Shown here: positions 11,451-32,300 of the stretch, in pieces
Position numbering within the stretch: position 1 is the first letter of the stretch
How the letters are laid out: every line of letters starts with the position of its first letter
Origin: Hyphochytrium catenoides
Lineage: Eukaryota > Protista > Hyphochytriomycota
Direction of reading: 5' to 3'
NCBI GenBank assembly: GCA_900088475.1
Contig: FLMG01003710.1
Coordinates: 102,578 to 166,577, forward strand
Length of the DNA stretch: 64,000 nt
Program-made: the position numbers and the translations under genes
Notes under the pieces: generated by a model
The model's database searches: none
What the model saw: only the letters and a program-made list of their open reading frames with translations
Told to the model about the DNA's origin: nothing

Positions 11451-14400
11451 ATGCGAAGCCTAAAGATGGCTCTACAGAGGAACGTCCTGAAAAGATGCAC
11501 CCCGTCGCTCAACACATCCTGTGTAACCCTGGAAGCTCTTCCAAGGAAAGCGCCCGGGTTGAAAGCCCTCTTGAAGAGGTCTCTGGCCACAGTTCCGGCA
11601 GCCAGAATGGAAGGTGCACATCTTTCACTGAATGTTAATGTGATGAAACTTCGGGTTGCTCTCACGCTGCTTCAAAAGAACTTCCTTCGACATGTCCTAT
11701 CGGCTATGCCTCCGGGTCCCTTTGCGGCATTCCATGATCTTGTCATGCCTCACTTCTTTTTGGCAACCATCTAAGGCCCATGCTTTATCTGGCTAGGTGC
11801 GGGTGGCAACGTGTTCGCCTATTTTTCTCAACGAGCTATGGAGGTCAAAGCTGTTAACCTTGGACAGGGCTTTCCTACCTTCGGCTCCCCCAGGTATAAT
11901 AAACCATGGTGAACCGGTCTTAAACCTTAACCTGGCCTCAACTAAGTATGTAACCCCTTGTCAACTGGTGCTGTTTCTATTCTCATGTCCGCTGTCTCCT
12001 CATGCCTTGCCAGCTTCCTGGAGGAAGCAGCTATCGAAGCGATCAAGGCCGGACACAATCAGTACACGCGGCCGGGAGGCCATCCACAGTTTGTACAGCA
12101 ACTAGCAGACTTTTACTCTCCTATCTTCGGGAGGGAAATTGACGCGATGAAGGAAATTGTCACGTTTGGAGGCGCTCAAGAAGGAATATTTGCCATCCTG
12201 TCAGCCCTGGTGAACCCGGTATGTAGCCAGCCTGTGATAATACGCTCTATCCATGAGACCATTTCCTTTGAACACGCTATGTTGAGGCGGCAGCCTGTTG
12301 TCCTCGATCACTAACAAGGTTCACTAAACCTCTACGCTAGCTGTCTATTAGTATATCACTTGTGATGGAGGCGGTTATCCTTGCACCTACGCTTGGGGCA
12401 CCCTTCCTATTTTTGCCCACAACGCTGCTCTCATCTCTTAACTCTTCAGAGGGTTGACCGCAAAGGTCCTCTCTTTCTCGTCGTTGGTCCCTACCTCTTT
12501 TGTGAGAGTTTCTTTCCCTTTACTCATTCCTCATCCCTACCAGGGGGAAGAGGTCCTCATCCTTGAGCCATACTTTGATGCATATAAAAAGGCATCTCTG
12601 ATGTTAGGGATAAAAACAGTCGGAGTGCCATTAAGATGGCAGCCTGGGCCAGAAGATAACGTTAAAATAGAAGGAAAAGCATTTCCGAAGGCGTCAGCCT
12701 GGAAGGTTGACCTTGACGAGTTGGAGGTAAGGAAGTAAGGCATAGGAATTGGCGCGAAGCTCCTCATGCTTAATCGAAGCTCTGAGCTTTCTTGATTTAC
12801 CCCAAATGATTCCTACATTCTAGCGCATAATCGTCTCTTGGAACTCTTTGTTAGAGTGCTCTGTCGAGGTGCTTGTCTCTCCTCACTATTGCTTGGATTG
12901 TCTTCTGAACGGATCTCGCTTTCCGATTCAACATGGAAGGTGACTGCTACAAGGCCAAAAGACTGACTCATGCTTGCCCCATAGTCGAAGATAACCAAGA
13001 AGACCAGGGTTTTGGTACTGAACACACCGCACAATCCTACCGGAAAAGTTTTCGCCAAAGAAGAGCTAGAGGCTATAGCTGAAGTTCTTCATAGGCACCC
13101 CCAGGTAAGCCTACCTATCCCTCATCGTCATATTCTCAGTCCTTTTTGTGATCCTCTTTCTCAATCTAATGATACGCACACTGTCTGACACGGTTCCCGC
13201 TCTTCCGCACCCTCTATTCCGATCGCCATGTCGAAAGAACGGGTACTGAGCCTTAAGACATGGAGATGTGCTGTTGCTACGTCCATCCTTTGACGTACTA
13301 TATTGCATACGGCTCGGACGTGCTCTAACTTCTCCTTTTGGTTTAAAAATGTGTGGCCCCAGGTTCTCGTGATCGCCGATGAGGTTTATGAGTTCATGTG
13401 TTACGGATCTGCGTCCCATCAACGACTTGCAACGTTTCCAGGGCTCCAGGACAGGGTCATATCCCTCTTCAGTGCGGGAAAAACCTTCTCTTGCACGGGA
13501 TGGCGGATAGGGTAGGAAGTTATCCATGTGTCTTTGCTGAGACGGCTAGCTACCGCATCAATCATTGGTTCCTTGTTTAATTGTTCTTCACCTGATTCCG
13601 CCTTCTTGGTCAGGTATGCTATATGCCCTCCTCAGTACGCGCAGCATATTTTGTCTGCCACCTCTATCATTATGTTCTGTTCGGCCACACCGCTTGAGCT
13701 TGCTTGTGGCACTGCCTTTTCTAAGGCTAAAGGAGAAGGATACTTTGAGTGGCTCCCGAAAATTATGACGGTACATTACATAACTTTATCTTAGCAGTGC
13801 AACTCCCTGTTCTTGTACCTACCATCAACCTTCAAGAGTGGTTTTGGTGCTACAGTTGCTGTTGCACTGGTGCTCTTACAGCCTTCGTAGTTGGTTGGTT
13901 GTCTCTTACAACCTTTCTACACCTTTCTAGTCGCTCACCTAATCGTCTTCACCGTCCATCCTTTCCTACTATCGATTGCCTTTCAGCTCTCCCCTAGTGA
14001 GCTGGATACACCCCATTACCATAAATTCATTGCACACTTCAACTAACGCCTTACTTCTGTGGTCAGGCCAAAAGAGATAAGTTAGTTCTAAGCCTCGAGG
14101 CGGCGGGAATGCAGCCCGTAGTTCCTGAAGGCGGATATTTTATTATGGCAGATACCTCCGCCCTTCCTGTGCCAGGGAAGACGCCAAAGGACAAGCTCAG
14201 CCCAACCATGGCCTTGGAGGTAAACACAAGCGGCTACCTTTAGAAATTTTTAGGCTCGCTTGCTTTACGACTTCTTGGCATCTTCTGCTGTATGCTGTGC
14301 TTACATCGTGGCATTGTTTCAGTATCAGAGCTAAGCTACTTCATGCCTTACATGCGTTTAGTGTGTGCATCACTTGCGCGACAGAAGCGACTCTTTTGGT

Positions 14401-14678
14401 GGTTCTCTCGTCCAGTCTTTTTTGAGCTCAGATTCTGCTTCCTCTTCTCTGACTGGCATGGCCATCTAACTGGTATCTTCCTACCCAAGGAACGGCCTGA
14501 TTTTCAAGTGGCGTCATGGCTAGTTAATTCTATGGGTGTGGCTGGCATTCCTATCACATGTTTCTACAGTCCAGAGTATAGGCATTTAGGTGATGACTTC
14601 ACGCGCTTCGCATTCTGCAAGGATGAAGAGACTCTGGACGGTGCAGGCAAGAAGTTTAGGGAGCATTCGACCTTATGA
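11451..14678 (+). CDS. KYAT: PLP-dependent class I aminotransferase, kynurenine/glutamine transaminase (KYAT1/3-like), ~9 exons, probable mitochondrial presequence
   Basis: Spliced motifs AVNLGQGFP, HNQYTRPGGHP, GAQEGIF, EEVLILEPYFDAY, LNTPHNPTGKVF, IADEVYE, SAGKTFSCTGWRIG (PLP lysine), PEGGYFIMAD, RFAFCKD. The N-terminus is Arg/Lys/Ser-rich and acid-poor; alternative start at 11466. Confidence 0.93.
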
Positions 14679-17026: not shown

Positions 17027-17575
17027 GTTCAGGTTTTGTGTTGTTGATTGTGATGGACATCTATCGATCCCCTGGAGAATCAGATATCGATTACTGAATA
17101 GATAGTGAAGGATGTTGGAAGGATGGCATGCCACTGGTTTGATCCTTGACCCTTGACCCTCTGTCCCCTTTGATTATCATATACTTGATTATCACAAGTA
17201 GCTTTGATTCTTCTTGCGCGTTGAAGTTTCTGTTGACAGAGAAGAGGAGAAGCATCGGTTCCGTGAAGCGTTGCCGGCAATCTCTGAACTCTGAACCCAG
17301 ATTAGGCTCTTGGTCGATAGCTTGAATGGCGGTGTGCCGACAGGTGGTGCAGCAGTCCGAGCCCTAAGCCCCACAGACAACGCCATACGCCTCCCTTGCT
17401 CCCGTCATCCCTTCCGTAGTCTCTCCCTATTGCTGGAGATATTGCTTTCCCTTCCTTACCCAGAACTTTCTCTTGCCAGTCAGAGTTTGCGGGCATGAAG
17501 CCAAGCACAAAAATTTGAGTGAGAGGATCGCAGGTCAAGCAGTACATTGAGACGTAAGGCTGATCAGTGTAAAAG

Positions 17576-20500
17576 ATGAGCTCTTTCCTCCAAAAGGTGG
17601 AAGGCTATCTGCAGCGCAATGAGCTCTTTGGTTCATCTACCGTAGAGGGAGGGAGAATCTTGCTGGTGAGTAGTTAAGATTGTTGATGTCGAGCTCGCTC
17701 CATCCACTAAACTTTTCCTTGCCACGCAGGACGATCTCAAGAAGAATGTGCAAGCGACGCTGGAAGAGGCCTCAAAGAGCGGTCCTAGCCCCCAGGGCAC
17801 GCTTAGTGTGAATTCTTCCTCAGCACAGTCACAGGATCTAGGTTGGTCTTAAAATTCATTCTCCTACACACTACCTTTTTAAACTGGATCATACTGTTTG
17901 TCTCTCGGGAGCGGAGCTTTTGACTTCTCTGGCCGTCTTCCTTTTGTTTGGAAGACTCCTGACTCTAAGACTCTGCTTTCGCGTAGCAACAAGCATAGAG
18001 AAGTGCCTCATCCATGGTTTGAAGCTGAAGAAGGACGGGAAGCGAAACACACTCTGGAATGTGCTTTTACACCTGAAGAAGTTCTGTGAAGACGTTGAGA
18101 CCAATAAAACAGAGAGCATCGGACGCATCATCAGCGCTATTGAAGGTGCCAGCAATCTGCAATGTGTCCAGGTATCAACCGTTCTTCATGAACTTACGCT
18201 ATCTATCAACTCGTTCTTTCATGACGGCGTGTGATTGATGGCACTTTGCTCTCGTCTTGTTGCGGACTTTTAAGTCCTCTAGGGGTAAGGCCAGGGCTTG
18301 GATTCGGCAGTCTTTAAACCACAAGAACCTGGCGTCGGCTGTGCAGGTAACTCATTCGCGTCTTGGCTTCAGATCATAATCTTTTTGTCGCACGCACTTC
18401 TCTCTCTCTTTTCTCCTTTTTGTCGCCTCCCTTACTGGGGTATTAGCGTCATGAGGCAGCTTCTCTATCATCCGATAGTTAGGGAACGCCCTGGTTGCTC
18501 CGATTCTTCCACCCAACACATCCACATTGCCTTCCTGCCAGAAGTGGCTCTCCACTTGTTCTGCTCAATATGCCCTTGCGGCTCTGTATGACGCTGTCGT
18601 ACTAATGCCTACGTTCGTTATCTGAATAACCCTCGGGCTGTCGCTGAAGTATCTGACAGAGGAAAAGTATGGATCTGTCTTGAGAGCAGACTTTGAGGAT
18701 GGAGCTTTACTCGTTCATCCGGAGCTATCATTGACGTTGGTAGGTTGAGTGTAATACCCGCACATCCTTTGGCCTGGAACTACTCAGGTTGTTCGACTAC
18801 TCTTCACTACGCTTCCTGTCTTTGCTGCATTATCTAGTATATTTCTGGTTGGCTGACTGCTCTTGATGCCTGTTAGGTTTCTATTTTGACTGCACTTGAT
18901 ACCGTCGAGTTTGAGTTCTTAGTAGACGACAAGCAATTAGATGCAGCAGCAGCCGCCGAGGCGGCTGCGGAAGGAAGGTTAGGTCACTTGCTTATCATCT
19001 TCTGACCGAGAGCCACGTTTGAAGAGATTGTCATGGGTCTGTCTAATTTCGACGTTTAGTGCGTTCTGCGTAGGTTACGGCTCTCCGTTGACTCTTCTGC
19101 TAATTTGTTCCCTTGCTATAACCATACCAGCCAGTTGTCAGTATTCCAAGCTTCTCTTCTGACCTCTGATCTCTCTCTTCCCCTCGACCCATTTGCGACC
19201 TCCCTTCAGCCCACGGCAGAGGTTAGATATCGATACTGCCAACAGTCTGATAGAGAAAATGGCTGTCAAAGGTAACGAACCTCCACCTCTACATGGACCT
19301 AAGCTAGCCAGAAGCTAATTCAAGAACTAATTTCTTTAGCCGACGGGTATTTTAGCTCTGCTCTTCGCTCGATGGAGGACCAAAGAAAGGTTAAGAAACC
19401 CTTGCATGCAATAGATTCCTTCAAAGAGCTATGAAAAACCTAGCCGAGAGAATCCTCTTTGTTCTATGAAGGATAGAAGAAACTAAGAAGGATGGCTATA
19501 GTTGCTTTCTACAGTAGAAACATCCTCAGCGCCGCTCTCATTATATCTGTTTGTTGGTTGTACAATGCAGGGCATTGCATCCTGGCAGAGGGTGTTCGGT
19601 GCATCCCTTGCTACACTGCTGCAGAGCTCTCACCATTGCGATTATGCCGTTCTGGCTCCGACCATAGGAGTGCCAAAGTTTATTGAGAGGGCCTGTGACA
19701 TTATTATCTCTAATGCCTTTGTACAGGGGCTCTTTGGGGACAAGTCAGCTGCGGTAAGCCATGGTGTTGTTAACACTTTGTACCTCATGCATGAAGAGAT
19801 TCAAGGCTCATAATACTGTTAGGACCCGGGCTCTCAGTTATCAGATCATCTCCTTACAGAAAACATCTTTCTGGGTCTTTCCTTCTCGTCCCTCACTCTC
19901 TCTCTACCTGGCTCCTGTAATGTTTTCCGGCGTCTAAATGCTGTATCCTCTTCTACAGTCGCAGCTGCAGGCGGTAGCAGATTACTTTGAGATCCACCAG
20001 GACTTCCCTCCGTCTGTAAATCCGCTATTAGTGGCAGATTGTTTGCTCAAGTTCTTGAAGGAGACAGAAGAACCTCTCCTAAGCTTGGAGTTCTATGAGC
20101 CTCTCCTGGCCTGTGCAAAGTTAAAAGAGGTATCGCCGGAGAGAAAGGAGGATGAGCGGCATGATTAGCACGCTTGCTTACGGATGCTCTTTCTGATTAT
20201 TTCTGTACTAAGGATAAATCCTCGATCATCCTGATCGTGCTTCTGTTGCTTCTCGCTGGCATTCATGTTATTTTACTCTCCTAGCTTATCAATGCCGCTT
20301 GTAGATCTCGTCTCGTGTTCGCAATCTCTCCTGTCTACTTTTGGAGTTGCCATGGTACAACAAGCCTGTTCTAAGGAAGCTGCTGAAGACGTGTGAGTAC
20401 CTTATGAAGGTAGGGACAAAGAGCGCACGAACACTGGATCGTAGAGGGAGAGAGAGCAGTGTATATAAGCGGAATAGGCCTTCAATGGAAAGAGTGAGCC

Positions 20501-23500
20501 AAATGACCAAGGCAACTTAGAGGCACAACCGTGAAAACCTTGTATAACCCTAGGAGAGAGTGGGGGACTTGCACTAGAATGAATTACCTGACAACGTGCT
20601 TGCTAGCCGGAGTTCCAGTCCCGAAGTGGGCTGACTCCTGCCAGTCTAGCTTCGGCTCTTGCCCCGGTGATTTTCCGCACTGTACAGGGAATCCCCCTTC
20701 CTCTCCCTGTGCCCCTTGGTGCCGGAGGAGACCCTGATGGAGGTAAGGAGACACCAAGCCCTCTCTTCATCTATTAGTCACAGTGCAGAGCCATGTTAAA
20801 GCGTTGCATCCTATCTGAACTTTTGATCACCAGGCGCCCTATCTCCTGGTTAAACTATGTATCTTAATCTTTATACATGACAAGACCATTAGCTTGCTAT
20901 ACTCTATTATTCTCTCCTTCTTGCTCTTAAGGTTGCTGCCCCTTTATCTCCCCCTCCGCTTTGATTAGATGGCAACCAGAATCTGCTAGGTGTAGAGCTA
21001 GTTCGCACTCTAGTCTCCCATGCCTCGGAGGTCCTGGCTCCGATGGATCAGGAATTCCTTCCGGTTCAAAAGGTATAATTATCTTGACTTCATCCTATTC
21101 ATTATTTTCCTCTGTTTATAAGCTTTGGGCGTGACGTCTTCATTTGACTTACATATCCCACTCTACCTCACATCGTTAGCACTGATAGTCAACTCTCCTA
21201 ATGCTTTCCGTTGACATACACTAGATGCTTCAGAGCAAGGTGGACTACTACAGGAGTATAGGGGAAAGTCTGGACAAGGTGAGTGCAGCTTTCAACTTGT
21301 GTCTCGATAACCCGTATTTCCTATCCTAGAAGTCCTAGCGAGCCAGTTATCTCCGATGAAAGTGCGCTTTTTTCCTGAGCACCCTTTCCCTTCTTTGTTA
21401 GCCTGTAAGCGCAGGGGACCCCAAACATGTAGAACAGTTGAGGTCTATCTGGGACTTTCTGGCTGAGGTGGATGTGGATCGCCTGATGCGGAGTTTCCAG
21501 CCTGATGGATTGCCGGTACGCTCGAGGCTTGCCTTCTTTTGCTAAAGTTTTGTGCCATTGTTGTCACGCATATACCTTAAGCACTGAGCAACGCTCACCC
21601 CTGAAACGTTGGGCAACTCTCACGCTGTCAATCAAACTGAGATCTTGTGCTGTTCATAACCTCGAGGATTCTTTTTATGGTTCCATGGTTAGAAATTGTA
21701 ACATCCCTTATCCTACCTTTATCGATTCCTAGGCCGAGCTGGACTCAGAGAAATCACTCTCCGCTTCTGAACTTTTCTCCTTGTCATCACATCGCTGGAG
21801 GAAGTGTGGATTTAGCGAGGATCCGGCAAAAGATTTCTCGCAAGGGGGGTTCCTTTCCTTGGAACTCTTCTGCTACTTCATCCGGAACTACCCAGAAAAA
21901 GCTCGAGAGGTAGGAATTCCTAAATCTATACATATGGAAATGAAGCTATTGTATAGCTCCCAGCCGACTTTATCCCTGAACAGCTCTTTCTAGACGTCTA
22001 TGACCGTCTGCCGCCCGTGGAATATTCTTAGGCATTGTTCATTTGTTCTGTCAATGTGAGGCTATTTTACGGTGCTTCTCTGGTTAGGTCGTTGCAGATA
22101 ATGGAGGACCTGGTCCTCATTGCTTTCCGGTCTACTACGTCACTGGCCGCATCGCTCGAATGACGGTTGGCGCTTTAGCACTTCTCCCGACTCCGGTGGA
22201 TGAAAATAGCCTAGTGAAGCTCTCGCTCTCCCCTTCTTTCTCTGTCCTAGAAGAAAGCAAAGGAGTGCTCAAGGTAAATCAAACTTGAAGAACCCTTTAG
22301 GCATATATTGTCTCGGTAATCCAGATTCCGTGATCCTCTGATTTCTCAAGCGTTATTCTGTTACTCGTGCTGGCCTAAGCGGCAGTTTTACGTGTGTTCG
22401 ATTGACTGGTAATACGCGTATGCCCATAAGGGCACAGCATGCTGATCAACCTGATCACATTTCCTCCATGCCCGAAGGTTGCATGCATGAGTTTGTTGCT
22501 GTTTGAGAGAAACTGGAGGGAGACCAATGCGAAAAGGCAGCATGTGGAAAGGTTAGAACGGCGTTGTTCACATTTGCATGAAGGGTCAAAAGTCAGCGGG
22601 GTAATTGGGTTGGTGGGATTCTCTATCGTTTTCCCAGCAGGAACTTACAATTGAATCTCAAGTCGCCTCTGGCTTTCTGACTGGAAGTTATAGGGTTATT
22701 GCCTGGGAGTCTTGCATTTGTTTTGTTATCTGGGGTTCCTCGAGGTCTGGTAGAAATTCTCCTCGAGCCGATGAGATCCAAATCTTTCAAGCGCGGCACT
22801 TTTAAGGATGTTTCTGTTGCCTGTGTAGGGTAATAGATGACACGGATCGTCAAATCCGTTGGCTTCTGTCACGGAGCCCTTCTAATGTCGACGAGATGTG
22901 GAAGCTCTGGATTGATGTAAGGAGAAGGATTGCAGAAGCCCACGCAGAGGGCCAAAGAGAGAACATCGCGGCGAAAGGGCTTTCCGCAGCCAAGGTCAGA
23001 TCATTGATGTCAGCCCCAACGCCTATTGACAATGCCAAACTCTGTGTCCTCTTCTCTTTTGTCTGACGACTTCTAGTCAATCATCAGCCCCAGAAGTAGC
23101 AAGAAGCGTCCTCTACCTCTCCAGCCATCTAACGGCCAGATTGAGACAGAAGCTGCTTCTGCGCTGTTTGCCGGGAAAAGAGAGATTCTTTCTCCAAGAG
23201 GAAAACGGATTGATAACGAGGACCAGTTTGAAGAGTTTGGGCTGGGTGACGATATCCCCATTGACGTCTCCGGAGTTTCAGGTAAGTGGTAAATGGTCCA
23301 AAAGGGACATGAGTGTTACACAGCACTCGAGGCAATTTGCTGTTGATCGCTCATTGTCATTGCAATCTCGTCATCGTGGCAGGGCACTATGATAGCCGCT
23401 CATTACCGCCACCTCCTCGCTCCCCAATCACTAAGATGAGCGGAGGTGTACTATCACGCCTTCTGGCTCCTTCTCTTATCCTTACCAAAGACGTGGTTGC

Positions 23501-24437
23501 AAGCCTGGAAAATGCTTTGCCTGAGGCTGCGCAGGGCTACGACTGGTCTTTGCTGTACTGGTAAGGGTAGTGGCAATATAAAGGCTTCCGGGAGAAGCTT
23601 TCCTACCAGTGCTCCCTCATCCGCATTTTGATATCTCATTCCCTTCCTGACCACTTTCATCTACTTGTTACCATCACATCCCCATCTGTTGCTCCGTAGT
23701 ACTGAGACTGATGGCTCTGCGCTGGAGACCATGTACCGAAAGGCTGTGGGTATCTCGCAGTCGATTGTTGTCGTGCAGACAGTGGAAAATGACCTTATTG
23801 GAGCTTACGTGACCGAGAGCTGGAAATCTAAGCCTTACTACTATGGAAACGGGGAAGTTTTCCTTTTCTCTGTCAAACCGTCGCCAGCATCCTTTCAGGT
23901 CTACAGATGGAGTGGAAAGAACTCCTACTTCATGCTCTCCACTGACGACTCTCTTGCATTGGGAGGAGGCGGGAGCTTTGGTCTCTACTTGGTGAGTCAC
24001 GCCGTAGGTTCCTTTCTTCCTCCTCATGTCAGAGTCCTAATCTAGAAGGTGTAAGACGAAACGTTTGGACTTTTCTAGATTCCTTTTGCAAGCAGTGGCA
24101 GGATGTGCCAACTATTTAATGTGTCGCGGTTTCTTCTATTTGTCGTCGCGTGAGGTCCAGGCAGTCAATCTGTCCGGCTTCCCTCAATGGCAATCCTTGG
24201 TGTTTGTTATAAGCTCATGGCCATTCCTCTGTCCTATTGCGATTGTGTCTTCTTGGTCGATCAAACTCGGCTCTACTTTCTGTCTAGCTTACTCATACTC
24301 ACTTCCATCAGGACTGTGACCTCTCTAGTGGTTCATCTGGATCCTGTGAGACTTTTGACTCTCCTAGCCTAGTGGCCCCTAAAGAAGATTTCACGGTTCA
24401 GAGGATTGAGCTCTGGGGGCTCAGAGCGATGGCCTAA
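17576..24437 (+). CDS. Multidomain RUN - RhoGAP(-like) - ELMO/CED-12 - TLDc protein, >20 exons
   Basis: RUN: IEKCLIHGLK, GKARAWIRQSLN, ALDTVEFEF (~17990-18930). RhoGAP: RVFGASL..GVPKFIERAC..QGLFG, VADCLLKFLKETEEPLL, LELPWYNKPVL, SLASALAPVIFR (~19570-21050). ELMO: HVEQLRSIW, WRKCGFSEDPAKDFSQGG..YFIRNYP, FERNWRETNA (~21400-22900). TLDc: WSLLY|CTETDG, IGAY, YYGNGEVFLF, LALGGGGSFGLYL|D..CETF..IELW (~23440-24437). Reading phases are compatible wherever I checked junctions; the junctions at ~22550-22840 are unresolved. Confidence 0.85.
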
Positions 24438-24946: not shown

Positions 24947-27900
24947 TTAGTCCTCAGCTTCCTCTGCAGCACCCTCAGCTGCAGCTTCCTGGCCTGTAAT
25001 GAGAGAATGAGGAATATAGATTATAAAGAGATTAGTCACACAGACAGAGCAGCATTGGGGTGAGGGCCAATTAGCCTGTGAAACTCACTGTGAAGCGACG
25101 TTAGGAACGTATGGTTACTCACTCTTCGTCTCCGCAACTCTAATATCGTCTTTGGTCAAAGGCGCGGTCACGTCAAGGTAAAAGCAATTGGCCGATAACA
25201 TAGAGACGGATAGTCCCACCCTCTCTGCAACGACAAGACGTATTTTGCGATTAAAAGAGGTAAGTTTTTGTAAGGAAACCGAGACAGGAACAGGCAGAAA
25301 ACAGAGAAGAGAAAGGTCAGCAGCCAATAAAGGGTCGGTATGGTAAGGAAGGCATCTCTTACCAAAGTTCTGAGGCTCTTGAATCGAGATCTCATGGGTG
25401 AACTCCTTGCCCGTAGGATGGATCTGTAAGACATATCCAAGATTGAAGGTAAGTCGTCAGCCTATTGCTGAGGAAAAGGGCAGCATAAGGGCAGCCTCAT
25501 AGCGACATGACCCAACGCATGACAACCGGACAAAAATGGAGGGACGGAGCCATTGAGAAGAAGCGTAGGTCTTATAAGAAACCTTGTCATAAGCAAGAAT
25601 CCTATCTGTTCCCTGCTTTTCTACAATGACCCAATAGAACTCCTTTGTCGCAATCTGTCTAGGGTCCTTCTTGGCGATCGGAAGCTTCGTAAGCACCTTA
25701 TGGCTCTGCTCTCCGTTCTTCATATGGGAAAAAGCGGTCAAACGTTAGATAGGAAGAACGCTGTAAAAAGGATCCACGACCCGGTAGAAGGGAATCGTCA
25801 GCAGCGAGATAAAAGGCAAAGGCTGTACGCTTGAAGTTGCAGGAGAGCGGCGGTCAATCCGACAAGAAGCAAGGGAAACATGAATCCAGGGGCATCATGA
25901 CTAGTTTTGATTAGCGCGACGTGGATATAATGAATTTGGCGTTAAGGTCTAACGTGGATTACTGGAGAGGTGACAAGAGGAGATACCGATACTGCGGAAC
26001 CTCACCTTCAAGTTGTCAGCGACGGATTGGAGCTCAATCACTATCTCTCCATCCTCGTCCTTCCTTCCTGAAACCTTCAGCGTTCTCTGGGGAAGCGTCA
26101 GTGACGCTGACGAGTAAAGACTCCTCTGTACCTCTTCTGTCATGTCCGCATCGTCTGCTAGGGCCAGAAGTACCAGTCTGAGGAAAACAAGAGCAGACGT
26201 GGCTATCTTCTTCTTGTTGAGTTCTAGTGCTGACGAGACCAGTGCCTGCGGGCAAGGTGAACACGAGGAAGGGTGAGTGTGACGGCTTATACCTGAAAAC
26301 ATGAAGCTTTGTCACTCTTGATGCCGTCCACGATGAAAAATTGTACGCACCTCAATGACGTATGGGACCCTCTCGAGAATGGGAGTGGCAAGCGGTTCGA
26401 CTGCGGATGAGGAAAGTAGTTGCGGTTCAGTTGAATGACCGTTAGTAGGTTCTAAGCAGGTTGATGAGAGAGCAAATGGCTGTTCTTGTTGCCATCAAGG
26501 AAAGTTTTCCGTACCTGACGAGAAGATCTCTGGGTGCTTAGACTGGTGCAAGTATGCCGTCAATATTGCTACACAGCGACTAGGAAGGAGTAACGTTAGC
26601 TGCGGAACAACAAGATTGAAGAAGAGCTTGTGGAAGCAGGTAAGGTTCAGCAACGACTTAGAATGAGAAAGACTGTCAAATAAGAAGCACCAGAACGATT
26701 TTCAAGGGGAAAACGCAACTCTACTCACAGCAGCACTGGGTGGGACTTTGCTTTTTTCTTCATGAGTCCAAGCTTCTGCATCTCAGCAATTTTCTCGTCC
26801 AAGAAAACTCGCTGAGGTTTGCTAAAGTTTGCGTAGCGGAGTACTTCCGGCGTCCGCATCACCAAGTCCATGATTTCCTTGCGACTCATGTCAGAACCTA
26901 CGACGAATTAGATTTTATGCCCATGCAGATCTTGCAATCTCTTCATCTAAACTCCCATGCACCCCGTTCCCAAAGGCGTGAAACCCGCTAGCATTATGAC
27001 TTGCCCCCTTCAAAGGTTCTTGTCTCTTGTCTTCGCTCTGTTCCTGACGGCCACACTTACAACCTCCCTTGCTGCGGACGATCTGCGAACTCTGGCAACA
27101 CTACATGGGTCTATATCTACCTAACCGCCCTCTTCCCAAGTAAGTCAGAGGCACTTACGTGATTGCAAAGTCTGTTCAATGAGCATCAAACTCTGCTGAC
27201 TGACAGCGAAGCTCTCTCCATCCTCTCCTCCAGGTCCTTGGTCCTCAGCGGGCTTGCGCCTACCCAGAAAGATGAAGAGCGAGGGGATACCCACTACCAG
27301 TGCGAGCAAATACGATGCTAGCATGTAGGCGTATCGGAAACAAAAAGTTGTATAAAAACAATTTGAAAAAAAGACGGGCCTGCCGTTAGCACTCGGATTA
27401 CATCTGAAGAAAAGGTGCTATAAGAGGTAGAGGTCGCACTGGTGGTATGTTCACATATCCAAACACTGCAGTCAAACAGGGACTGCAGCAACTCAGCTGC
27501 AAATCGTTCGTTCCCATTACCTATAAAGATCTGCTTGACGGTAGCGTGCCTTAAGAAGGATGGCACCCCCAGCGCAACAAGCATTGCCTGTTGACCGTCT
27601 GGGTGTCCATACTTCATCCAATTCGCCTTCGCCTCAAAGTCCGTCAATGTTTCATAAGCCTTAACCAGCCGGGTAAAGATGTGCGCAGCCGTAGCATTGC
27701 CCTAGAAGTAAGCGGGATGTACATAGAGTTTATGAGAGCAATCAAACATTGCCTATTGAAGGGATAGCATGGGAGATTTTCTTCAACCAGCTCATGCGAC
27801 CAAGTTCAGCAGGATGAGATGAATTGTGGGACTAATAACTATAGGTAGTGAGAAATGACAATAGACAACAGATGCCGTCGATGCTAAGTAGGGAGAAGGT

Positions 27901-28488
27901 GAAGAGGAAGGTTGAATTATTGGAGAAGGCGGAGATGAGCCTACGGGATTCTTATCTGGATGGTAGGTTCGGCTCAGTTTCCGGTAAGTCTTCTTGATAT
28001 GTGCCATACTATCGGTGTCTGTCACACCCAGAATCTGGTAAGGATCAAAGCCTTCAGTGGTCTGCTCCTGAATGAACTGGATTCCATGGACCAAAGCCCA
28101 CCACGCCACTACCAGGCCCTAGACCATGAGCGAAGGGGGACCGTATACAGCAGGTTAGCAGCAGCAGGTAAGCAAGTAGTATGGAGATAACCTAGGTTAT
28201 CCCTCTTTGATCGAAAGAAGGCAGATGACTCACCACCAGGTTAAGGATAAAGAGTCCAGAGAACTTCGACGGCGGCTTCTGACCATATCGTGGAGCCTTT
28301 ATCTCTTCCGTCTTCCTGGTGATTCTTTTACATGAGAGCATATGAGCCATAAATCCAGGGCTCCAAAATGAGAGTGCCAGGTACCTCTTAAAGGAGTATA
28401 TGGTAGATGGGACAGCGTAGAGAGCTATCATGACCACCGCAAACATGTAGAAGCCAAGGTCCTCGTTGAGATCCTTTGCCTTCGCCAT
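24947..28488 (-). CDS. SEC63: ER translocon J-domain protein Sec63
   Basis: N-terminal TMs; J-domain FDPYQILGV..IKKTYRKLSRTYHPDKNP|..LVKAYETLTD..NWMKYGHPDGQQ..ALGVP; third TM; Sec63/Brl-type C-terminal exons (EFYWVIVEKQGTDRIL..); acidic end ..GAAEEAED* at 24947. Confidence 0.92.
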
Positions 28489-29330: not shown

Positions 29331-32300
29331 ATGGCAGGTTCCGATCGCGAGCGGGCACGAAGGGCTAATGCTTTCGTGGAAGCAGCAGCAGCTAATCATG
29401 AGAAGGAAGTCGTCATCCTCTATAAGCGTAAGGCTTGAATGCAGGAGCTTTAGTCTTGATTGGTCCAATAGAGGTTCCTCCTGCTGCTGCTCGGTTTCCA
29501 CCCTCTCTCTTCATTGTATCCCTGGTTTCTATTCTAAAAAAAGTTCACCACCCTTCAGCGCCCGTTTAGATCTCGATCTTACCTGATCTTGTCACAGAAC
29601 AAGGCTTCTCCATCAATGACACCCATGAGCTGTTGGGCTACTCGGCGTTGCATGCTGCCTCTGTGTTCGGGCACGAAAAGATTGTAAAGTGGCTGCTGAA
29701 GCAAGAAGAGATAGATGTCAACGTTATCAACAGGAAAGATGGCTGCACTCCTCTTCACTATGCAGCAGCGGCTACGTCACCGTTGGTTATCATGATGCTC
29801 CTGGATAACGGTGCTGACAGGCTAATTAAAGACAAAAGGTGTGGAAGTCTTACATCTCTCAAGGGCTTGATTTCTTTTGCAAGGATTGTCCTCCTTGCGT
29901 ACTTTCTCTTCTGGACTTCTTGACAGTTCTTTATCAGATTGCTTTACATACTCCGAGCGTAATTAGCGTAAGTCTCTGAAGCTCTTTGTAAAGAATATTT
30001 ATTGTTTCCTTCCGTGATCTCTTTAAGGGGAAGAACCGCGTTGGACACTGCTCTCGCGCAGGTGAAACCGGAACTAGTCAAGCTTCTTCGAGTTCTCCCT
30101 GCCAGTCCCCAAAATCTTGCTGTTCTCTCCAGCTCTGAGCGAGGATTCTTCCTTACATGGACACCCCCTGATTACAACGAATCATCAATAGACTTTCATG
30201 AGTTGCATTTCAGAGCTGTCCTTGATGAAGAGCACAGAACGCCAGATGAAGAAGAAGAAAGCGGAAAGGACCCGTGGACTGTCTGGAACATGACGGCCAG
30301 TAGCCATTACACCTCTTCAGGAGAGGTAAGCCCTCGAAGGCTGTTTACGTAACCAAAGCTCTGCAGCTTTCTTCCGCCACCTGCCCGATACGCTCAAGTC
30401 CCATGTTTTTCTCGTGTTCTCCATAATCTGGCTTGATAAGAGTAACGCCTCTTATTAGCGGCAAATTTTCCAACAGTAGCGCTTAGCTCATGTCTCAATA
30501 ATAGCGTTTGTTCTCATTTCTTGCCTTCCTCAACTCACTTCTGCCACTCTCACGATTAACAAACAGATAGACGTTTTACATCCATACAAGGGCTACGAGC
30601 TCCGACTCAGGGCCCATAATGCTGCCGGTTTTGGTCCCTTTTCATCATCAATCTTTGCATTCACCTCTCCCTCAGTTCCGGACCAGCCGGAGAAGCTCAG
30701 GGCGCTGTCCTCGCTAGGCCGTAGCGTACTGTTATGCTGGGAGGTCGCTGCTAGTAATGGGAGTAATGTCGACTGCTATGAGTTGGTGTATTATCATACG
30801 CACCAAAACTCAGCTGGGGAGGAAGAGCTAAGTAAGTGTGCTTTCTCGGCCTTTCCTATCATCTCCCGCTTGTTTCATATCGGCCTCGCTTACTACCTGA
30901 ACTTGCTGTGTTGCTTCATTTTATCCTTCGAATGCGCCTTGATCAGCCCAGGTAAAGACGACTCTCACAGTTAAGGATGACACGTTCTTAGTAAGCGGAC
31001 TAGGCCAATCTCATATGTATAGGTAAAGGCACTTCGATAGTTGAGCAGTCTTTTACTGAGCTTTGACTGAAATCCTCAAGCCTAAGCAATCCTCCACTGT
31101 GCTAGATTTCAGGTCCGTGCCCACAACAGCTACGGCTGGAGTGAATTTTCGGATGTGCTAGAAGTCAGAACCGCAGGTGGGTTCCGTCCTTCAAATATCC
31201 TGAAGCGCGGAAGGACATGACTTGTTGCTTTCCCTTTATAATGCCCATGCTAGACCCTCCCTCCATCTGCTCACTCGCCAGTAGGAGTGTGACGTTGCGC
31301 TGGGCAAGGATGAAGGGTATGGACGGAGGAAAGTTAAGCTCGTTCGCAGTATCACAAACGGTCGTTTCTGAGGTAGCAAGGGCACTAACTATATTTCTTC
31401 ACTAGTCTTACAGCTACTACTTCTCTTCTTCTTTCCCTTGCACTCTCTCAATTGGTCTAGGGCCCCACTTTCTCTGAAGTAGTTTCTTTCCCTTTGCTTT
31501 CATAGGAGAGTTTATAGCCATGGGTTCACTCTTCCAGCTGTTTTCCCCGATTATCCACTTCCACTGACTAACGATTTAGGATTCTATTCCGCTATATAAG
31601 GAGCTCAGAGGAACTTCCACTACTATTCCCTGCAACTTCGAGCTTATTAGCATAAGCGAAGATCTGCTCGAGATAGCTGTAAAGGACTTGATACCTGCAA
31701 CGGCCTATGTTTTCTACCTGCAAGGGAAAGAAGAGCGGGAAGGACAAGAGGCTGCATTGTTTCCGTCCCTCAATGATTGCACGATGACCGAAGTCATTAG
31801 GACTAACGGTGGGACTTCTATCACTCGACATCATTGCCTTGTCTTTGTCTTCCGATGTCTCTTTTGTAACCATGTATGAGCTACTTGCCTTCTAGCGTGA
31901 TATTTCCGGCTCTCAAGGGGACTTAAGAATGTAGCTTTCTCACCTTCAAAATTCGCTTTGCGAGTACGGAAGCCCCCACTTCTGCCCGTACTGCCCTTCT
32001 TCCCACTGTTCACTTCATAATCAATCCTTGTCCTAATTCTTCAATGCTAACTATTATGAGCTCCCTGTCCTTGATTGGCTCTAATTTATGGGCTCAGCTT
32101 CAGTCACCTCCATGTTGAGGTCTAACAATAACCTGATTATGTCTTTGGCCGCTTAGATGATTGTCCCGAGGCACCCTATTCCCTAGCGCTTGGTTCTTTA
32201 GGACCACGTTCCCTGGTCTTAAACTGGACATCTCCGCGGTGTAATGGACAACCAGTTGATAGCTTTGAGTTAATGCTAAGAGAAACCGACATAGAGAAGT

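Follow-up and report, generated by a model that had tools for sequence, protein, structure and literature searches.

A gene encoding RUN, RhoGAP, ELMO and TLDc domains was located at positions 17576-24437 on the forward strand of a 64,000-nucleotide (nt) stretch of Hyphochytrium catenoides DNA (contig FLMG01003710.1, positions 102,578 to 166,577), the whole of which is referred to here as the window. The window is eukaryotic, with ~48% G+C and numerous short open pieces, and the gene model was built by hand, reading the window sequence directly and using homologues as guides. The model comprises 23 exons and 22 introns, giving a coding sequence of 3033 nt and a protein of 1010 amino acids (aa). 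All introns are GT..AG and range from 64 to 320 nt, with a mean of 174 nt (the published mean intron length for H. catenoides is 208 bp; PMC5795050), and the phases are compatible at every junction. The start codon is the ATG at 17576, which has an in-frame TAA just upstream at 17570-17572, and the sole stop in the model is the terminal TAA at 24435-24437. A previous sequence-only reading of this DNA had given exactly these limits and had described four domains in order on one strand, joined by introns that were phase-compatible where it could place the junctions, and with no obvious internal stop or restart; the domain order was borne out by Pfam matches above their cut-offs and the continuity by the 23-exon model.

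The forward strand was scanned with Pfam exon by exon, as translations of stop-free pieces. Matches to RUN, RhoGAP, ELMO_CED12 and TLDc were collinear on this strand, each at or above its curated cut-off. The RUN domain (PF02759) was matched at 18239-18376 with 22.5 bits, against a gathering cut-off of 22; this region lines up collinearly with RUN in the homologues, and the nearest solved structures are those of RUFY3, RPIPx and PLEKHM1. The RhoGAP fold (PF00620) was matched at 19938-20165 (25.6 bits, cut-off 24.5), the ELMO_CED12 fold (PF04727) at 21733-21990 (43.3 bits, cut-off 23.3) and TLDc (PF07534) at 23632-24042 (89.5 bits) and again at 24288-24434 (26.7 bits). Pfam mostly gave no match on the short trimmed exons, and the domain coverage of these was taken from a family hidden Markov model (HMM) built locally from 18 full-length members. 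Across hmm 86-1022 the exon matches to the family HMM are strictly collinear, and the spliced model scored 456 bits (E 1e-140), distributed over three collinear HMM domains (hmm 75-220, 274-472 and 640-1022); the RhoGAP part gave 121 bits. No match to a TBC (RabGAP) domain was obtained with Pfam on any exon of the gene or in any homologue. A candidate 24th exon (18542-18598, forward strand) was dropped, its inclusion having reduced the HMM score of the RUN part from 57.1 to 36.6 bits and requiring an intron of 51 nt.

The spliced model was compared with its homologues in local alignments, with the family HMM, by BLASTP and in a tree. A phmmer search with the TLDc core exon (23701-23991) returned 2431 matches among 1.84 billion cluster representatives, none with more than 51% identity and none representing a close orthologue or a self-hit. 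The family was recognised only through a few long phmmer matches, among which three shared the architecture. These were P0041 (RUN 107-226, RhoGAP 348-487, ELMO 707-840, TLDc 927-1099), P0115, which is the Blastocystis protein KAK8803392.1 and has all four domains, and P0026, a Peronospora belbahrii protein with RhoGAP, ELMO and TLDc. Word-index searches with P0041 yielded ~45 proteins from oomycetes, each with the full set of four domains or the greater part of it, belonging to Phytophthora, Pythium, Globisporangium, Lagenidium, Plasmopara, Peronospora, Hyaloperonospora, Saprolegnia, Achlya, Aphanomyces and Thraustotheca; most had been named automatically as 'Oxidation resistance protein 1' and others as 'TLD domain-containing protein 2'. 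The Ectocarpus protein CAB1111428.1 (1920 aa) contains RUN, RhoGAP, a weak ELMO (below the Pfam cut-off) and TLDc in order, and the metagenome proteins P0208 and P0216 each have three of the four domains. BLASTP gave single alignments, over residues 163-1006 with the Blastocystis protein and over residues 66-721 with a Thraustotheca protein. By tblastn the Blastocystis protein detected the ELMO and TLDc exons only, the full alignment needing the spliced model. These collinear alignments identify the gene as a non-oomycete stramenopile orthologue of a four-domain family which, as the shared domain order shows, spans Bigyra, Pseudofungi and Ochrophyta.

Compared with oomycete members such as P. 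infestans PITG_00476 and Saprolegnia SPRG_03345, the H. catenoides protein shares the four Pfam domains and their order, the lengths being 950-1130 aa, and the alignment is collinear and includes the linker from ELMO to TLDc. Identity reaches 40-45% in TLDc but only 22-28% in the rest of the protein, and, compared with these members, the H. catenoides gene has 22 introns. Domain order is likewise shared with the Blastocystis protein and with the Ectocarpus protein, although the latter is longer and its motif columns failed to align. In a maximum-likelihood tree the oomycetes formed a clade (93/94), with the H. catenoides protein outside it and Blastocystis further out. The H. catenoides branch is long (3.86 changes per site). 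The tree is consistent with vertical descent, but the placement is soft because two long branches meet.

Homologues in stramenopiles had been anticipated by the sequence-only reading and are present in the oomycetes, Blastocystis and the brown alga Ectocarpus. No published description of the RUN-RhoGAP-ELMO-TLDc architecture was found in the literature, subscription journals and supplements lying outside the coverage, in agreement with the earlier statement that no characterised protein was known to possess it. The impression of a singular architecture was only partly upheld: the family is uncharacterised, but proteins of dozens of stramenopiles with this arrangement are already in public databases, where automatic naming has given them a misleading label. 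The H. catenoides gene is a new and divergent member of the family, to which it adds a double arginine loss and a reciprocal pattern of loss across lineages (see below).

The ESM Atlas contains two oomycete clusters, one with all four domains and the other with RUN-RhoGAP-ELMO but lacking TLDc. A TLDc-less paralogue of the H. catenoides gene was found on another contig of the genome (L001, G000:C2762:60000-69999, minus strand, ~9985 down to 5090), with RUN, RhoGAP, ELMO and post-ELMO linker collinear with the family HMM and no TLDc within 5 kb downstream. The pair formed by the four-domain gene and this paralogue mirrors the two oomycete clusters. A further arrangement was seen in P0189 (Thraustotheca clavata THRCLA_05335, 1903 aa), whose database model places an N-terminal half with a SET domain (PF00856, PF17907) ahead of the four domains; the fusion may not be genuine and may stem from a prediction that merged two genes.

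The junction at ~22550-22840, which the sequence-only reading had not been able to place, was settled as a 277-nt intron in phase 2 (22552-22828), lying between exons 22478-22551 and 22829-22994. Joining 22551 to 22829 gives the sequence of the homologues without a gap, and one continuous HMM domain (the third of those given above) takes in ELMO, the linker and TLDc up to its end. Exon 19 has an alternative in-frame donor at 22916/22917, and exon 20 could be skipped by use of an alternative phase-0 acceptor at 23434-23435, with ELMO and TLDc remaining in frame.

The locus could in principle hold two adjacent genes, the first encoding RUN-RhoGAP-ELMO and ending by read-through of the intron 23282-23382 at a TAA (23291-23293), the second a small TLDc-only gene starting at an ATG at 23436. 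This ATG is in frame and just ahead of the TLDc domain, and RUN-RhoGAP-ELMO paralogues lacking TLDc exist both in the H. catenoides genome and in oomycetes. However, merely ~145 nt would remain for a terminator and a promoter, the similarity to the fused homologues extends upstream of the ATG (tblastn, P0041 residues 903-957), the exon 22829-22994 matches the ELMO-to-TLDc linker of the fused family and the splice phases all suit a single product. Two genes are therefore considered very improbable, and the evidence from homology and splicing favours one. The exons of this one-gene model are listed in Table 1.

Table 1. Exons of the H. catenoides RUN-RhoGAP-ELMO-TLDc gene (window positions)
Feature	Position	Strand	Observations
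Exon 1	17576..17665	+	Tentative; ATG after in-frame TAA; ends in phase 0; donor ctg/GTGAGT; N-terminus not conserved
Exon 2	17730..17841	+	Tentative; ends in phase 1; weak donor tag/GTTGGT; family HMM aligns last residues only
Exon 3, RUN start	17987..18171	+	Family HMM 86-122; weak Pfam RUN match, profile 5-45, E 0.096
Exon 4, RUN core	18275..18346	+	Pfam RUN 22.5 bits, profile 58-89; family HMM 136-163
Exon 5, RUN	18650..18739	+	Collinear with family HMM
Exon 6, RUN end	18877..18977	+	Ends in phase 2; family HMM 191-218
Exon 7, linker	19210..19271	+	Ends in phase 1; splice sites and phase fit; not conserved
Exon 8, linker	19340..19389	+	Splice sites and phase fit
Exon 9, RhoGAP start	19571..19753	+	Finger codon GGG (Gly) 19736-19738; family HMM 294-354, E 7e-11; tblastn to oomycete proteins
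Exon 10, RhoGAP	19959..20129	+	Pfam RhoGAP 25.6 bits, profile 31-91
Exon 11, RhoGAP	20305..20409	+	Family HMM 417-449; tblastn
Exon 12, RhoGAP	20607..20742	+	Ends in phase 1; conserved Asn of homologues is Ser; family HMM 449-472
Exon 13, RhoGAP C-terminal part and linker	20969..21072	+	Phase 1 acceptor fits; poorly conserved
Exon 14, linker	21225..21278	+	Splice sites and phase fit
Exon 15, pre-ELMO-core	21402..21515	+	Splice sites and phase fit; alone no Pfam match
Exon 16, ELMO with ELMOD-type GAP motif	21733..21909	+	Catalytic Arg position is TCG (Ser) 21838-21840; Pfam ELMO_CED12 43.3 bits
Exon 17, ELMO	22088..22273	+	Family HMM 699-739
Exon 18, ELMO end	22478..22551	+	Ends in phase 2; family HMM 744-769; gap-free join to exon 19
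Exon 19, conserved post-ELMO linker	22829..22994	+	Family HMM 767-835, E 5e-8; tblastn to P0041 residues 839-902
Exon 20, low-complexity insert	23077..23281	+	Ends in phase 1; insertion relative to homologues
Exon 21, TLDc lead-in and first strands	23383..23560	+	Ends in phase 2; family HMM 851-886; tblastn to P0041 residues 903-957
Exon 22, TLDc core	23700..23991	+	Pfam TLD 89.5 bits; NCOA7 structures E 2e-21
Exon 23, TLDc end and stop	24312..24437	+	Pfam TLD 26.7 bits, profile 131-169; TAA 24435-24437

The residues required for catalysis were compared in the two domains of the GTPase-activating protein (GAP) type. In the RhoGAP domain, the arginine of PRLFR in oomycetes lines up with that of GLFR in ARHGAP11A and of GIYR in ARHGAP15. 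All 10/10 oomycetes have Arg in this finger column and so keep the finger, Blastocystis has Tyr, and H. catenoides has Gly, its motif reading GLFGDK instead of G-(I/L)-(F/Y)-R. The glycine is not a splicing artefact, as the join to the next exon adds no gap. The gene occurs once in the assembly (61.0 Mb, 4759 records), and neither a second haplotype nor another copy that retains the finger was found there. A second polar residue of the RhoGAP domain, Asn in the oomycetes, is Ser in H. catenoides.

The GAP consensus of the ELMODs, WX3G(F/W)QX3PXTD(F/L)RGXGX3LX2L, contains an arginine which is invariant and essential, and even its replacement by lysine abolishes activity (PMC8483735). The H. catenoides domain shares the ELMO_CED12 fold with the Arf/Arl GAPs ELMOD1-3 and keeps 8 of the 13 consensus positions, but the arginine is Ser (DFSQGG, TCG at 21838-21840), the next Gly is Gln and one residue is missing from the first spacer, which sets it apart from an ELMOD-type Arf/Arl GAP. 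The Blastocystis protein keeps 13/13 positions. Oomycetes have E, D, Q, A, N or I in the arginine column; Blastocystis and the metagenome proteins P0216 and P0222 have Arg. The catalytic arginine is thus retained by oomycetes in RhoGAP only, by Blastocystis in ELMO only and by H. catenoides in neither. The TLDc-less paralogue has Gln at both catalytic positions, with the RhoGAP finger EGIFQTD.

With glycine in the finger and serine in place of the ELMOD arginine, conventional GAP activity is unlikely for either domain of the H. catenoides protein. The sequence-only reading had proposed a candidate hub that could integrate three GTPase classes at endolysosomes and regulate acidification. The presence of four domains in one gene was confirmed, but the hub idea presupposes working GAP domains; a role in GTPase binding, at endolysosomes and in acidification would follow from what is known of the domain families. 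Some GAP families need no arginine finger, RapGAP-type GAPs using an asparagine in its place, and conservation of both domains can still be recognised (the RhoGAP part scores 121 bits), so that other residues might substitute for the canonical arginines and leave the protein an active GAP. We regard this as improbable, given the retention of merely 8 of 13 ELMOD consensus positions, the change of the second RhoGAP polar residue from the oomycete Asn to Ser and the inactivity of ELMODs with lysine for arginine (PMC8483735). The very long branch, together with the loss of both arginines, might also indicate a decaying or non-functional copy. Such decay appears extremely unlikely in a single-copy gene that has 1010 codons over 23 exons without an internal stop or frameshift, exclusively GT..AG introns and intact TLDc core residues.

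Among solved structures, those most similar to the TLDc core exon are NCOA7 (E 2e-21) and zebrafish OXR2, with mEAK7 much further away, and sequence similarity was seen to the NCOA7, Oxr1 and mEAK7 chains. In Ncoa7, alanine mutants of G815, G845 and G896 abolish V-ATPase binding (PMC8608904). The equivalent of G815 is kept across the family alignment, and those of G845 and G896 are kept in H. catenoides (the Gly of LIGAYV and the GGGGSFG run, as read off the alignment with structures). The TLDc domain looks intact and belongs to the NCOA7/OXR type. The protein ends a few residues past TLDc and, for this reason, has no C-terminal helix of the mEAK7/Rtc5p type; in Rtc5p this helix inserts into V1 (PMC12139955). 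Oxr1 and NCOA7 likewise end right after TLDc. The N-terminal parts of NCOA7, OXR1 and OXR2 are of the LysM/GRAM type, whereas domains related to GTPases occupy this part of the H. catenoides protein.

RUN domains bind GTPases of the Rab, Rap and Arl8 type, RhoGAP and ELMOD folds dock on GTP-bound Rho and Arf/Arl proteins, and TLDc domains bind the V1 part of the V-ATPase, promoting disassembly (Oxr1p) or assembly (Rtc5p). Taken with the gene structure, domain content, orthology and missing arginines, which are established, these properties lead us to favour, with some confidence, a reading in which this 23-exon, four-domain stramenopile orthologue, both GAP arginines having been lost, acts as a GTPase-binding scaffold that delivers TLDc to the V-ATPase. 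A multivalent scaffold is the most economical reading because both catalytic arginines are gone. We infer the binding of GTPases, the binding of the V-ATPase and the cellular site of the protein from the domain families. The RUN, pseudo-RhoGAP and pseudo-ELMOD modules would recognise GTP-loaded GTPases of the Rab/Arl, Rho and Arf/Arl types on a membrane; this recognition would bring the NCOA7/Oxr1-type TLDc module to the V-ATPase on that membrane, where it would modulate V-ATPase assembly or activity.

TBC1D24, an analogue of such a scaffold, provides a precedent: its TBC domain has no arginine finger and is fused to TLDc at the C-terminus (PMC7015432), and the protein co-precipitates with the V-ATPase (PMC8608904). 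An arginine-less GAP-type domain and a C-terminal TLDc are common to TBC1D24/Skywalker and the H. catenoides protein. In TBC1D24/Skywalker, however, the GAP-type domain is a TBC (Rab) domain and RUN is absent, whereas H. catenoides has RhoGAP and ELMO; outside TLDc the two are analogues, not homologues.

Several points weigh against the scaffold reading. The equivalent of Ncoa7 S817 is Ala in H. catenoides, and in Ncoa7 the S817A mutant reduced V-ATPase binding, a partial effect (PMC8608904). Binding of the V-ATPase is not automatic for each TLDc, since the purified TLDc domains of Tbc1d24 and Tldc1 failed to pull it down (PMC8608904). The long branch could reflect relaxed constraint. The case for one gene is made from homology and splice logic, and homology supports neither exons 1 and 2, which are tentative, nor the linker exons.

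On a broader and rather doubtful view, the family might be a stramenopile-wide counterpart of TBC1D24, derived from an ancestral dual GAP for Rho and Arf/Arl that was coupled to the V-ATPase. Arginines would then have been lost by lineage (in ELMO in oomycetes, in RhoGAP in Blastocystis and in both in H. catenoides), and at present the proteins would read which GTPase is found on endolysosomal or contractile-vacuole membranes, thereby setting the assembly of the V-ATPase.

TLDc proteins are recently recognised as direct regulators of V-ATPase assembly, and their membrane targeting is poorly understood. A stramenopile TLDc joined to three modules for small-GTPase recognition is a natural candidate for such targeting, and the family is present in the major pathogens Phytophthora, Saprolegnia and Blastocystis. 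The lineage-specific arginine losses constitute a comparative series in which a GAP role of these domains might be told apart from a binding role. To this the H. catenoides gene contributes an intron-rich, doubly arginine-less member with a corrected gene model, rather than a new kind of system.

Elsewhere in the same genome (G000), at least four further TLDc loci (C2421:7577-8119, C2152:3699-5105, C4745:20597-21354 and C4411:6641-7122) and ~10 further ELMO_CED12 loci were observed. Neighbouring sequences in the window were judged by eye. Upstream of the gene and on the same strand, 11946-14675 resembles a class I/II (kynurenine-type) aminotransferase gene. A J-domain signature (HPD motif) at 27321-28118 on the reverse strand possibly belongs to a gene of the Sec63/DnaJ type, and exons at 29570-30971 on the forward strand resemble ankyrin repeats followed by fibronectin type III-like sequence.

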